A DNA stretch of 64,000 nucleotides from Octopus bimaculoides (GCF_001194135.2 NC_068983.1:69805354-69869353); one strand, 5' to 3'; positions 14,218 to 34,053 are shown, numbered from the stretch's first letter. A program made the numbers and translations. The notes: generated by a model not told the origin, from the sequence alone.

Positions 14218-14313
14218 GTTTGAAGGTCTTTGATTGCTGTAGTTCTCCAAAAAGAGCAGTGGATATTCTGCTGAGCGAGATCAAAGGGCATGGATGTTCA
14301 ACAACGATAAATG
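14218..14313 (+). CDS. class C GPCR exon, VFT1 N-terminal lobe
   Basis: Pyrimidine tract + TACAAG|, donor AATG|GTAAGT; phase 1-1; (G)LKVFDCCSSPKRAVDILLSEIKGHGCSTTIN, parallel to GIVIDSCHS and GLLILDTCSS in the later repeats. Confidence 0.8.
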
Positions 14314-15483
14314 GTAAGTAGAGCAACAATACACTTGATTGATGTTTATAATACATTCATGAGTTAAAAGTTAGTTTCAAACGATTAGTAATTCTCCTTT
14401 GCAGTGTCGCCTTTATATTTCTGTAACGATTAGTAATCCTTTGAGTGACCAGGCTTGAATCGAACTCAGAACACCAAGAAACACAACTAAATACCATCAG
14501 GCACTTTGTCCAAGTACTTCCACAAATTCAGGCAAAGAGTACGGTCGATTTAATCAGCATCACTTCTTAAACAGTACAATTCAAAGATCTCACTGAAACT
14601 AAACAAACATAACGAAGTGCAGCGAATCCGTTTCTCTGCCACTCTACCAGTTCTACCATCGTCTGTTCTTTTTAGCATTATCACAACAGTATTATTAATC
14701 ATCCTTTCCAATATAGACACAAGGCCTGGAATTTGGGAGGAGTGACAAATGGATTACATCGGTTCAAGCGCTCAACTAGTACTTATTTTATCGACCCTAA
14801 AAGGAAAAGCAAAGTTTACTTTAGTGGAATTTGAACACCCTATTATTAATAATAAGTATTATTATCAATACTTCAAAACTGGGAATATGATTTTTGTTGT
14901 TGAGTAGCTTTAGATTAAGCCGGTTAATGATCAAACAACATTTCGTCTTTACTTATTATTTTCAGAATTAGTGTAACCCTTAACTGGACGGTGAATTAGC
15001 TGCAACGTTAGAGCATGAAACGAAATTCCACTGACGTATTTATTCCGTCCCCTTGCGTTCTGAGTTCAAATCTCAATGGGGCCAACTTGGTCTTTCACTT
15101 TTAGGGGCTGACGAGTACAGTGTGATAGTCTGGTCGATATAATGATATATATGTATATAGATAGATAGATATCATACATGTATTTATTCGTAAAGAAGTC
15201 TCGTCTTTTGGATATAGCTTGTCGCTTTTTTCTTGTGTTCTTTTGGCACTTATAAGTGTAATGTTTAATATAACTTATATTCAATCCTCAGCACTTAGCT
15301 GGCAATATAAAATAATTATCCGAGAATTAATACGTATATTTTGTAGGCGTTAACTTAAGAAAATTTTTTTCATTTTTTTAATTTCTTATCCTGTTTATAG
15401 TGTCATCCGTGTATAAGAAACACATTACATGCATTAAGCTTTCGTTGAATACTGATAAGAACGATTTTGTTTGCATTTTTCAG

Positions 15484-15644
15484 GTATTGTCATATTCACT
15501 TCTTTAGAAGTGTTTTCTGAAATGAAAAATTACCTGCAGAGATTTCAGATCCCTCAGGTTATTATTTGGGGAGAACTTCAAGAACCGCCTAATCCAACAC
15601 CATTCCAAACGATCATACGACTGAAATCAATTAAAAAGTCAAAG
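15484..15644 (+). CDS. class C GPCR exon, VFT1
   Basis: TTTTTCAG| acceptor, AAG|GTAACT donor; phase 1-0; GIVIFTSLEVFSEMKNYLQRFQIPQV..., cf. mGluR GVIG...NLLRLFxIPQI. Confidence 0.85.
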
Positions 15645-15705
15645 GTAACTAAAACTAATAAGTGTCAACATCATATTTAATCGGAACAGATGAAATTTCA
15701 ACAAC

Positions 15706-30134: not shown

Positions 30135-31225
30135 GTTAGTGGAAAGTTTTCGATTTTATCAATGTGTACAAGTGTGAGTGTGAAAGTGTGAAAATGTGAA
30201 ANNNNNNNNNNNNNNNNNNNNNNNNNNNNNNNNNNNNNNNNNNNNNNNNNNNNNNNNNNNNNNNNNNNNNNNNNNNNNNNNNNNNNNNNNNNNNNNNNNN
30301 NNNNNNNNNNNNNNNNNNNNNNNNNNNNNNNNNNNNNNNNNNNNNNNNNNNNNNNNNNNNNNNNNNNNNNNNNNNNNNNNNNNNNNNNNNNNNNNNNNNN
30401 NNNNNNNNNNNNNNNNNNNNNNNNNNNNNNNNNNNNNNNNNNNNNNNNNNNNNNNNNNNNNNNNNNNNNNNNNNNNNNNNNNNNNNNNNNNNNNNNNNNN
30501 NNNNNNNNNNNNNNNNNNNNNNNNNNNNNNNNNNNNNNNNNNNNNNNNNNNNNNNNNNNNNNNNNNNNNNNNNNNNNNNNNNNNNNNNNNNNNNNNNNNN
30601 NNNNNNNNNNNNNNNNNNNNNNNNNNNNNNNNNNNNNNNNNNNNNNNNNNNNNNNNNNNNNNNNNNNNNNNNNNNNNNNNNNNNNNNNNNNNNNNNNNNN
30701 NNNNNNNNNNNNNNNNNNNNNNNNNNNNNNNNNNNNNNNNNNNNNNNNNNNNNNNNNNNNNNNNNNNNNNNNNNNNNNNNNNNNNNNNNNNNNNNNNNNN
30801 NNNNNNNNNNNNNNNNNNNNNNNNNNNNNNNNNNNNNNNNNNNNNNNNNNNNNNNNNNNNNNNNNNNNNNNNNNNNNNNNNNNNNNNNNNNNNNNNNNNN
30901 NNNNNNNNNNNNTATATATATATATATATATACATAGATAGATAGATAGATAGATAGAGAGAGAGAGAGAGAGAGAGAGATACAGGCAGATAGACAGACA
31001 CATACATACGTATACATATGTATGTGTGTATATACGTATGCACGTATCTATATATATGTGTGTGTATGTATGAATGAACGAATAAATGTATGTATGTATG
31101 TCTATGAGTGTGTATGAATGAATGTATATGTGTATGTATGTATGTATGTATGTATGTATGTATGCATGCATGCATGCATCTATCTGTCTGTCTGTCTGTC
31201 CATCTGTCCATCTGTCCATCTAGAT

Positions 31226-31406
31226 CAGTGGTTCCCATCCGTTTTTTGGCCATGCCCCACCAAATCATTTCTAAAATCCTGATGTCCCCCTTGTGATATT
31301 TAATTTTTGTTATTCAAAATTTGGTTAATGTTTACTATATTATCCGGAAACAAACTAAAAAAAATTGTGCAACAGTTGTAAAAAAAAATGTGTAGAAAAC
31401 GAATAT
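31226..31406. mobile_element. hAT (Charlie-like) element end, runs into gap
   Basis: CAGTGGTTCCCA terminus, same type as the elements at 55412 and 59472. Confidence 0.5.
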
Positions 31407-32892
31407 NNNNNNNNNNNNNNNNNNNNNNNNNNNNNNNNNNNNNNNNNNNNNNNNNNNNNNNNNNNNNNNNNNNNNNNNNNNNNNNNNNNNNNNNNNNNNN
31501 NNNNNNNNNNNNNNNNNNNNNNNNNNNNNNNNNNNNNNNNNNNNNNNNNNNNNNNNNNNNNNNNNNNNNNNNNNNNNNNNNNNNNNNNNNNNNNNNNNNN
31601 NNNNNNNNNNNNNNNNNNNNNNNNNNNNNNNNNNNNNNNNNNNNNNNNNNNCGGCATAACTACAGATTTCTGCGCCCCCGACTTTGGATGATCATAACTT
31701 TCAGAAAAATGGATATTTTTTAATGAAATTGTCTACGAATATGTGTTATATCATGTAGATTCCGAATATACAAAATTTTTGGGGGAAGTGTTTTAGGAAG
31801 GGTTGCGGTGGGGAATTTCGGAAAATTCACCAGAGTTCACTTCAATTCATCTTAACTTTCAAGAAAATGGATATATTTTTTAATGAAATTCTCTTCAAAT
31901 ATACCTCAGACTATGTAGATTCCGAGGACATAGAAATTTTGTGGGAAAACAATGGGGGCTATTTTTGAGAACCGTTCCCCACTCGCGGGTGTTTCTGAAC
32001 TAGTCGTCCATATTTGTTTCATTTTCTCCGTTTTGTGCGTTTGTGCATCCGTAGATCTCTACCACACACACACACTAACACATGCACACACACGGATGCA
32101 ATACAAACCCCAGAGAATCCAGGAAAACGACCTTATGAACCTATGGCTCGGGAAGAAATTTTGATCCTATATCCTCTTAACGTATCTACCTTTTACTGTT
32201 CACGTTTCTGTTTCTGTCTTTTATTCCGTTTACTATGCATGTACTTTTGGTTATCGTTGCTATCTTTCACTACATGTTTACTTGACTTCTTGCATCTTTC
32301 TGTCTCCACTTTTACTCCTTTTCATCGGGTTGTGGTGCACCTGAGCACTGGATGCATTAAACTCATTAGTCTGAGTAACATCAAAATATGTGACAACCGC
32401 CATCACACTTAAGTGAACCCACTGCTAAAGATACTAACCAAAAGTCGGGTACTCTTCTTTTCTACAAGCATCATTTTGATTGGTTAATCCGTTTTACTTT
32501 TTTCTGAAGAGGAGAAACTAATTCGTACCTACTTGATTCATGGCTAATAATTAAAATTTAACCGTAAAACCATATTAACATCTTTTATTTCGTAGTAATG
32601 AAAAAATATGAGACCGAGATTTTGCGATTTCTATATTCTTCATTTTCTTCATTTGTACGAAATAAATAGATGAAATGCGATTCTACAGTTGTATTTTAAT
32701 TTCTTATTGCTATGAAGTAACTAAGTGTGAAATACTTTCTTTCATCACAAATGAGCAAAATTAATGAACCAACCAAAAGGAATAATGGAGATTATTATCT
32801 CTTTGATGTAAAATATAAAATAGTATTGCCGTTAGTACTCTATTCATAGTGAATTTATCATATTTTATTTCTTTATCTTTTATCTTCATTAG

Positions 32893-34053
32893 GTTGCCGA
32901 ATGGAAGGATGACACTTTGTCCGAAGTTACAAAAACCACCATCTTACTGAATGACAATTTTGGTGATGATCTGGATAAAGAAGATGTCAGGTTAATGATG
33001 GAGGCCAGTTGTGAAGAGAAATCTTGTACGTGTGTGAATATGCCACCAAAACCAACTCCATCTATGAAATCTACAATGGCACTAACACTACGGGATGAAG
33101 GATTTGTAAAGTCGACGGGTCAGTTTCGGGGAACTATTTGGGCAACTGTAGTAATAACAGTGGCGGCTGCTGGTGTCTTAACAGCGATTGGAATCTTCAC
33201 GTATCTTCTTTATAAATATTGTCTGGGTACCGGTTGCGGACGACGCTATTGCACTTTAGCGTTGATCCTGTTATTTGCTCTTGTTGTACAATATTCCACC
33301 ATCTTACCATTTGTTTTCACGCCCAACGAACTTGTATGCGAGATGCGTTATTTTGCTCCTGCTTTTGGTTATGCATTTACCCTTAGTATAATACTCGTGA
33401 AGCTAATGAATCTTCACGATTATAGATTAATAGGACTCGGTGGAACTTTATCAATTGTCAACCAGTTATTGACAATTGTTTTTATAACAGGCATCCAAGT
33501 AGCAGTCGGTCTGCAACGATGGCTTCTAATGAAATCTGCACTGGCAAAGATGGTTACTTACTATGGAGTTTCCATCTATAGTTGTTTGTTTGATAAGTAT
33601 GAATTTATTTACTACATCTGTTACCCGATGTTTCTACAGATTCTCATTTTGCTTTATGCAATCTCTCTTTACAAAGAGAAGAGAAATCTCCGTGAAGCCA
33701 AATATATTCTTTTGGCTTGTGTTTTCAGCATTGTTGTTTGGTTGTCGTGGCAACTGGTCTACTTTTTGCAATCAAGCAAATTCATGCAACCGGCTGTCGC
33801 AATCGGTATCCTAATATTTACCACTGTTAATTTATCTCTCATCTTTATTCCTAAGATACACATGATGGCCACTCTAAGATATGATGTCAACAAGACGTCA
33901 CAGGATCACTACAGTACCAAAGCCGATTCAGACTTTTTCTTTGAAAGACCTTTTTCTCTTCCTGGCACATTGAAAACATCTGTTTCTGAAAAAACATATG
34001 CAAGATCTTACGACGCTTTTGAGAATTCAAATTATTCATCGGGGTCCGTTTGA
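32893..34053 (+). CDS. class C GPCR terminal exon: short stalk + 7TM + C-tail
   Basis: TTCATTAG| acceptor, phase 0, 386 aa to TGA; seven hydrophobic segments; class C signatures TPNELVCEMR, ILVKLM (TM3 Lys), NLREAKYI (cf. NFNEAKFI), FIPKIHM (cf. FxPKxY). Confidence 0.95.
   Translation, partial: VAEWKDDTLSEVTKTTILLNDNFGDDLDKEDVRLMMEASCEEKSCTCVNMPPKPTPSMKSTMALTLRDEGFVKSTGQFRGTIWATVVITVAAAGVLTAIGIFTYLLYKYCLGTGCGRRYCTLALILLFALVVQYSTILPFVFTPNELVCEMRYFAPAFGYAFTLSIILVKLMNLHDYRLIGLGGTLSIVNQLLTIVFITGIQVAVGLQRWLLMKSALAKMVTYYGVSIYSCLFDKYEFIYYICYPMFLQILILLYAISLYKEKRNLREAKYILLACVFSIVVWLSWQLVYFLQSSKFMQPAVAIGILIFTTVNLSLIFIPKIHMMATLRYDVNKTSQDHYSTKADSDFFFERPFSLPGTLKTSVSEKTYARSYDAFENSNYSSGSV

Follow-up and report, generated by a model that had tools for sequence, protein, structure and literature searches.

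The 64,000-nucleotide stretch of the Octopus bimaculoides genome analysed here (GCF_001194135.2, NC_068983.1:69805354-69869353; the whole of it is called the window, and positions are counted from its first letter) carries a gene for a G-protein-coupled receptor (GPCR) belonging to class C in which three Venus-flytrap (VFT) domains, referred to below as flytrap units 1 to 3, stand in series before a single seven-transmembrane domain (7TM). We find six coding exons of this gene on the plus strand (Table 1). A preliminary description of the window, made by a model from the sequence, had placed the exons at these coordinates, joined them in frame through GT-AG sites and estimated about 1685 residues, all of which holds on the evidence of the exon boundaries, the open frame and the RNA contigs. 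Every internal exon boundary has the form AG/exon/GT, and the joined exons make up 5057 nucleotides (nt) which, read from the third base of 14218, give 1684 codons and one stop in frame, the terminal TGA at 34051-34053. The open reading frames (ORFs) beneath exons 4, 5 and 6 are the three longest in the window that do not cross a run of N, and at a GC content of 35% this excludes chance as their origin.

Table 1. Features of the three-flytrap receptor gene in the window (Cys, cysteine; TM, transmembrane segment; AF2, AlphaFold2)
Feature	Position	Strand	Content	Evidence
Coding exon 1 of the model (second or later coding exon of the gene)	14218..14313	+	Flytrap unit 1, lobe 1 in part; first 2 nt complete a Gly codon; open in frame offset 2	tblastn with the O. 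vulgaris ortholog, matching 14151-14315
Coding exon 2	15484..15644	+	Flytrap unit 1	RNA joint; tblastn, 95% identity to residues 130-185 of the O. vulgaris ortholog
Coding exon 3	17030..17776	+	Remainder of unit 1: end of lobe 1, divergent lobe 2, closing strands; ends in phase 0	RNA contigs, Pfam, AF2, Foldseek
Coding exon 4	26354..27694	+	Cys linker 1 and entire flytrap unit 2; phase 0/0	
Coding exon 5	28584..30134	+	Cys linker 2 and flytrap unit 3; phase 0/0	
Coding exon 6 (last)	32893..34053	+	Closing strands of unit 3, Cys linker 3, 7TM, tail, stop	
Cys linker 1	26435-26467	+	CPSYCPACIQC; precedes unit 2	
Cys linker 2	28680-28712	+	CNGWCPQCYQC; precedes unit 3	
Cys linker 3	33010-33033	+	CEEKSCTC; precedes the 7TM; only Cys motif between unit 3 and TM1	
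7TM	about 33124-33867	+		Pfam 7tm_3, hydrophobic segments
Intron 3	17777..26353	+	Runs of N at 18709-19068 and 20721-20824	
Optional 27 nt	26327..26353	+	Alternative upstream acceptor, preceded by AG; translates as PFIFSFVTQ	
Intron 5	30135..32892	+	Runs of N at 30202-30912 and 31407-31651	

The availability of Logan contigs from RNA runs of O. bimaculoides allowed us to follow the exons on transcripts. Single contigs carry all six of them in two runs (5568 nt in run X5 and 5723 nt in run X9), and both join 14217-14312 to 15483-15645 over a GT..AG skip. The loose end of an RNA contig beyond 15645 is the start of exon 3, and contigs cover 17028-17778 before passing straight into exon 4; in contig coordinates, exon 3 (691-1441) abuts exon 4 (1438-2778), and exon 5 (2779-4334) abuts exon 6 (4330-5568). 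The GT..AG joint between exons 4 and 5 (27692>28582) was seen in four runs, and the loose ends at 30137 and 32891 each read into the other's exon. Four more runs were matched through exon 6 only; the contig with this exon measures 5.4-5.9 kb in three of them and 3.0 kb in the fourth. The 3' untranslated region reaches at least 34129, up to which a contig of run X5 extends from 32891.

All four runs of N within the gene span fall in introns 3 and 5, and the contigs have nothing inserted between the exons, so that these gaps conceal no exon of the main mRNA; tblastn with the orthologs likewise found no match within intron 3. The four gaps, together with an older RefSeq model whose N-terminus was indeed wrong, are what could be held in favour of a gene-model artefact, that is, three adjacent class C genes or pseudogene fragments fused across assembly gaps. 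We regard this as extremely improbable, given that all six exons are contiguous on single RNA contigs in several runs, that cuttlefish mRNA contigs encode the same architecture without a break and other mollusc genomes have it too, that the 1684 codons run on without a frameshift, and that the sole hydrophobic helices are the seven at the C-terminus. A fusion of tandem genes was accordingly rejected, as the RNA contigs refute it, and the concern of the preliminary description that the exons might belong to separate transcripts is answered by finding exons 1 to 6 back to back on one contig.

The gene model is incomplete at its 5' end, lacking a start codon and opening in codon phase 1. Upstream of 14218 the RNA contigs go on for about another 430 nt, of which the last 30 before that junction encode ...VNIASSETNR(G), which corresponds to residues 90-99 of the O. 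vulgaris ortholog. Neither a sensitive tblastn search with residues 1-99 nor the 30-nt RNA loose end gave any trace of the first ~99 residues in the window. They lie upstream of it or in one of the gaps at 2833-3551 and 12555-12662, and so, therefore, do the signal peptide, known from orthologs only, and the first strands of unit 1. Two segments at 11718-11789 and 13172-13255 encode the 38-residue N-terminus of the superseded protein XP_014774355.1; the RNA contigs enter a different upstream exon, and these old first exons look like a prediction artefact. Further downstream, the optional PFIFSFVTQ insert lengthens the linker between units 1 and 2 and defines RefSeq isoform X1; it is present in XP_052822170.1 of O. 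bimaculoides and XP_036357082.1 of O. sinensis, and the RNA contigs inspected use the downstream acceptor (26354) and not the one at 26327.

The gene is O. bimaculoides LOC106872030, and residues 45-1684 of the model are identical to XP_014774355.2 (isoform X2), which RefSeq labels ‘uncharacterized protein’, so that the preliminary description had arrived independently at a model already in RefSeq. Three relatives of full length came out of a search through 5.8 billion proteins: an O. vulgaris protein labelled ‘metabotropic glutamate receptor-like’ (1783 residues, 96% identical), in whose 90% cluster LOC106872030 falls; a protein of Argonauta hians (1776 residues, 80% identical); and a cuttlefish ortholog (1935 residues, 49% identical) whose cluster includes a protein of Acanthosepion (Sepia) pharaonis. 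The last is found uninterrupted on RNA contigs of 6.5-6.6 kb in 16 runs. Cuttlefish-lineage transcripts come in two C-terminal forms, one of 1935 residues (...SSGSV) and one of 1921 (...KTYSRS), which suggests alternative splicing or polyadenylation within the conserved tail. At least 14 mollusc genera have predicted orthologs, each of these unnamed or labelled as similar to metabotropic glutamate receptors (mGluRs). The question left by the preliminary description, whether this architecture is already catalogued, can thus be answered with yes, by RefSeq for LOC106872030 and by the predicted molluscan orthologs. A literature search, from which subscription journals were largely left out, found neither this gene nor any multi-flytrap class C receptor described. 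The gene itself is not new, as RefSeq contains it and many relatives are in the databases; the architecture seems never to have been examined.

The three flytraps are recognisable individually. When the pieces of the ectodomain were scanned singly against Pfam, each matched ANF_receptor above the gathering score, with E values of 6.6e-8 for unit 1, 1.4e-9 for unit 2 (where the match spans positions 10-344 of the 353 in the profile) and 7.6e-11 for unit 3. Together with 7tm_3, these are the domains that the preliminary description had predicted, and the three cephalopod orthologs give the same pattern. The series of flytrap motifs that it had pointed out can be read in the translation of unit 2 (GDFYVALVLPV, VIDSC, WSYL, ICI, CSGKKGLC) and unit 3 (GDILITAMMPV, ILDTC, WNHV, ICI, CGGKGGLC), and more weakly in that of unit 1 (VFDCC, WSYI, ICI), the weakest of the three by sequence. 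Unit 3 is the most mGluR-like of them: phmmer against the Protein Data Bank (PDB) aligns its residues 58-467 with residues 4-399 of mGluR8 (E 3.4e-15, full length). Unit 2 and unit 3 align by hhalign over 396 columns, the Cys motif included (probability 96%, E 2.6e-9). Unit 2 alone found no PDB match by sequence, and its fold was therefore established through an AF2 model (pLDDT 73.6, pTM 0.75) that in Foldseek matched only mGluR ligand-binding domains in the PDB, with mGluR5/2/1/8 at the top (E 5e-18, TMq 0.56-0.59). For unit 1 the AF2 model was built from the O. vulgaris ortholog with an alignment of nine sequences (pLDDT 68, pTM 0.74), and Foldseek against the PDB returned only class C flytraps, namely those of CaSR, mGluR and T1R (E 2e-14, ~490 aligned columns). 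Fewer than two flytrap folds would have spoken against the proposed architecture; three are present, and Pfam, Foldseek, the alignment of unit 3 with mGluR8 and the RNA contigs together place three flytrap folds and one class C 7TM on one transcript of about 5.5 kb.

A short Cys linker comes after each flytrap, of the form CxxxCxxCxxC after the first two and CxxxxCxC after the third. No Pfam match at E<=1 to the nine-cysteine domain NCD3G, through which mGluR, CaSR and T1R relay the closing of the flytrap, was obtained in the window protein or in the orthologs. The 7TM matches 7tm_3 (PF00003) with 85.7 bits against a cut-off of 33.5 (E 5.3e-24), and its seven hydrophobic segments, at residues 1376-1623, are the only ones in the protein. 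Aligned by phmmer to mGluR3 (E 1.1e-9), it places K3.50, NxxEAK, W6.50 and PK in register, with the octopus motifs LVKLM, NLREAK, VVWLSW and FIPKIH. An alignment of 12 family members shows no variation in the linker cysteines or in the switch residues of the 7TM, the latter being K1567, E1665, W1680/W1683, P1717-K1718, C1546 and C1628. Behind the 7TM stands a cytoplasmic tail (...DSDFFFERPFSLPGTL...) that is unlike the tails of mGluRs and contains the motif ERPxSLP (ERP(Y/F)SLPGTL), which is confined to the molluscan family among 227 proteins compared. In the full-length contig of run X9, exon 6 shows four A>G differences within a stretch of 32 nt in TM1 (33150, 33153, 33159 and 33181), three of them synonymous and one changing Thr1395 to Ala, that are absent from runs X2, X5, X7, X10 and X14. 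This cluster could reflect clustered A-to-I editing or a haplotype, and, as it was seen in one run only, we do not use it as evidence of neural expression.

Word-indexed homolog searches gave little, with two proteins found from the 7TM alone and four from the 12-sequence alignment. A full HMMER scan with units 2 and 3 against 1.84 billion representatives yielded 187 relatives at E<=1e-3, of two kinds, many of which are long and matched in 3-6 stretches. Profile hidden Markov models (HMMs) of the single units match in the order unit 1, unit 2, unit 3 and 7TM in Lottia, Haliotis, Mizuhopecten, Sinanodonta and Saccostrea, with weaker matches in Nucella. In relatives from Mytilus, Biomphalaria, Babylonia, Batillaria, Mya and Mercenaria the 7TM and tail are the same, and the gene model shows a weak unit 1 or lacks it. 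Three units, 7TM and conserved tail are found in cuttlefish and argonauts as well, and an LIGLGG loop between TM3 and TM4 is common to several molluscan family members. The survey for the same architecture that the preliminary description had recommended thus recovers colinear three-flytrap orthologs in gastropods, bivalves and cephalopods. Since the order of the units is colinear in gastropods and bivalves, the triplication is older than the divergence of cephalopods, gastropods and bivalves, and the three units have remained open and recognisable since then.

The exon structure suggests how the ectodomain arose. Exons 4 and 5 each correspond to exactly one unit of Cys linker plus flytrap, and exon 6 starts at the position homologous to these in the next unit, with the three boundaries just before VGQING, IGQYTI and VAEWKD. 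As these are phase-0/0 exons with homologous boundaries, tandem duplication of an exon encoding linker and flytrap most likely produced the ectodomain.

Among solved structures, the closest relatives are mGluRs, colinear over flytrap and 7TM. A profile of the 12 family members scores mGluR3 at E 4e-81, mGluR2 at 1e-80 and mGluR8 at 6e-66, with mGluR8, mGluR7 and mGluR4 in the range of ~1e-64 to 1e-66 and CaSR at only 4e-42. The matches to mGluR8, mGluR4 and mGluR5 form one colinear stretch over unit 3, linker and 7TM, profile positions 941-1688 being aligned with residues 33-841 of the mGluR8 chain. By these comparisons the family probably descends from mGluRs, and the C-terminal half of the protein can be read as a complete mGluR-like receptor to which two flytraps have been added in front. 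With the mGluRs of group II (mGluR2/3) and group III (mGluR8/7/4) the octopus receptor shares the flytrap fold, the 7TM switch residues and the TM3-ECL2 cysteines (ECL2, second extracellular loop), but it differs from them in its two additional N-terminal flytraps, in having linkers of 3-4 cysteines in place of NCD3G, and in a tail that is unrelated to theirs and specific to the molluscan family.

A further difference concerns the ligand pocket. In mGluR1 the alpha-amino acid is held by Ser165, Thr188, Asp208, Tyr236 and Asp318. Compared with mGluR8, octopus unit 3 keeps the equivalents of Ser, Thr and Asp318 and has lost those of Tyr and Asp208, whereas in the other molluscan orthologs none of the five positions is conserved. 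The glutamate contacts are thus partly kept in the cephalopod receptor and lost in its counterparts elsewhere in molluscs, and the agonist is probably, to judge from these residues, something other than glutamate.

Taking these observations together, we consider that the gene encodes the cephalopod member of a mollusc-wide family of orphan class C GPCRs derived from mGluRs, a probably dimeric, G-protein-coupled receptor with stacked flytraps, and we would give this reading a probability of about 0.65. The suggestion of a multi-flytrap orphan receptor in the preliminary description is supported by the architecture and the single transcript. The receptor would dimerise and signal through heterotrimeric G proteins like other class C receptors; the class C switch set, consisting of the TM3 Lys, the Glu of NxxEAK, the TM6 Trp, the PK of TM7 and the TM3-ECL2 cysteines, is kept. 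The membrane-proximal unit 3, with linker 3, may drive the 7TM in the way that flytrap and cysteine-rich domain do in mGluRs, and the two distal, more divergent flytraps may provide extra binding or allosteric layers or, alternatively, bind a protein partner across a cell gap.

Parallels for such distal layers may be found in the amino-terminal domain of NMDA receptors and in VFT1 of BvgS. In NMDA receptors the distal layer of amino-terminal domains modulates the proximal layer allosterically, and ionotropic glutamate receptors in general resemble the octopus protein in having two clamshell layers per subunit, the distal one LIVBP/ANF_receptor-like; they differ from it in being ion channels without a 7TM, and their second clamshell is another binding-protein fold. 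BvgS shares with the octopus receptor two serial flytraps before a membrane-spanning signalling module, and its mobile distal VFT1 and closed proximal VFT2 jointly set the state of the kinase (PMC4352136). We use it here as a working analogy for flytrap stacking; as a bacterial histidine kinase BvgS is no GPCR, and no homology was sought.

Conservation is uneven along the protein, and this bears on the role of the distal units. Identity to the cuttlefish ortholog is 43% in unit 1, 48% in unit 2, 51% in unit 3, 70% in the 7TM and 86% in the tail. The divergence of units 1 and 2 beside the tail, the most conserved part of the protein, is also what would be expected if these two units were not sensors and bound a protein or matrix partner on another cell, as in a long-reach adhesion-type or trans-cellular receptor whose 7TM and tail serve chiefly for scaffolding or are constitutively active in signalling. 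The variation of the pocket residues across the family fits with this too, as do the 18 N-glycosylation sequons and 35 cysteines of the ectodomain, and the tandem flytraps of BvgS can set a default-on state without ligand (PMC4352136). The class C signatures of G-protein coupling are, however, all retained and invariant, and units 1 and 2 are predicted to keep the full bilobed fold, so that we consider an adhesion-type function unlikely, though deserving of attention.

The reading as a ligand-gated, G-protein-coupled receptor would also have to be set apart from that of an environmental chemoreceptor of sucker, skin or olfactory organ, in which three flytraps would broaden or combine the recognition of tastants, as the preliminary description had suggested in proposing a chemosensor. 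Vertebrate taste and olfaction make use of flytrap class C receptors (T1R, V2R and OlfC), and three of the five mGluR residues that hold the amino-acid backbone are kept in cephalopod unit 3. Chemoreceptor families are, however, typically expanded and fast-evolving, whereas every named relative of this family is a mollusc protein colinear with the octopus one, the 7TM and tail are highly conserved and evolve slowly, and tblastn found no tandem paralog within the 64 kb window. A chemosensory role is weakly disfavoured on these grounds, and we judge it less probable still than the adhesion-type function.

Several points weigh against the assignment as an mGluR-derived, G-protein-coupled orphan receptor. 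What is said of its function draws on sequence, RNA contigs and predicted structures; the AF2 models are of moderate confidence, with pLDDT 55-77 in lobe 2 of unit 1, and the first ~99 residues appear here as taken from orthologs rather than from the window. The contigs leave room for isoforms in which exon 4 or exon 5 is skipped in frame. With NCD3G missing, coupling through the three-cysteine linker 3 is an assumption. Finally, the pocket of unit 3 differs between cephalopods and other molluscs, and it could be that a small-molecule ligand does not exist.

Predicted class C receptors with several flytraps occur beyond this molluscan family. To our knowledge, class C GPCRs whose structure or pharmacology has been studied all have one flytrap per subunit, apart from GPR158/179 and the GPRC5 receptors, which have none, and the statement of the preliminary description that mGluRs, CaSR, T1Rs and GABA-B each carry a single flytrap stands for characterised receptors; it does not extend to the multi-flytrap receptors predicted in several phyla. 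Pfam counts four ANF_receptor domains in a protein of Saccoglossus (XP_002735016), three and two in two proteins of Branchiostoma (XP_035691717 and XP_035696128) and four in a protein of the cluster containing Haemaphysalis longicornis LOC144147242; all four have 7tm_3, and none has NCD3G. Similar proteins of the 2.8 kb class occur in a nemertean (Tubulanus, XP_074641006), a scallop (Argopecten, XP_069135753) and a whelk (Babylonia, XP_076434694); local unit HMMs suggest more flytraps in proteins of this class. All these other multi-flytrap proteins are ‘uncharacterized’ or ‘mGluR-like’ predictions. Several multi-flytrap class C proteins were also seen on RNA contigs of 8-10 kb and are thus expressed.

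The multi-flytrap receptors of other bilaterians share with the octopus protein serial ANF_receptor domains, one 7tm_3, short CxxxCxxC linkers and the lack of NCD3G, but their flytraps lie nearer to the canonical mGluR form (ANF_receptor E down to 4e-188), and they have neither the molluscan tail motif nor the LIGLGG loop. Tentatively, and at somewhat less than even odds, one may see in the multi-flytrap class C receptors an unrecognised, ancient bilaterian branch of glutamate receptors, lost in vertebrates, whose stacked flytraps and miniature Cys linkers would integrate several ligands or span a cell-cell gap. The molluscan receptor, whose cytoplasmic tail is invariant, would then be a conserved orphan with a signalling mode unseen in characterised GPCRs.

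Little else was recognised in the window. Six ORFs of at least 120 residues downstream of the gene (37429-60273, from the scan of 34134-64000) had no Pfam match and no similarity to the receptor, and ORFs of that length elsewhere in the window had no Pfam match either; no tRNAs were found, and the repeats detected are microsatellites only. Three further runs of N lie downstream of the gene, within 34134-64000. Four short segments (14700-14805, 15108-15209, 28337-28378 and 34100-34130) attract very large numbers of unrelated RNA contigs, with depths ranging from hundreds to tens of thousands; these intronic and 3' segments are presumably copies of an abundant transcribed repeat resembling a short interspersed nuclear element (SINE-like).

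We believe that the three-flytrap receptor matters first of all for the way in which class C receptors are thought to work, as current models of their activation rest on single-flytrap geometry, from which it departs. The maintenance of three serial flytraps in molluscs, along with predicted relatives in hemichordates, amphioxus and ticks that have up to four by Pfam count, suggests that stacking of the flytrap fold is compatible with coupling to a 7TM. On a practical matter, gene models of this kind that are labelled ‘metabotropic glutamate receptor-like’ probably give a wrong idea of the ligand. Questions that can be tested now arise, such as how the closure of a clamshell is transmitted over a long distance, whether distal flytraps act as allosteric layers, and what these orphan receptors sense in the nervous or sensory tissue of molluscs.

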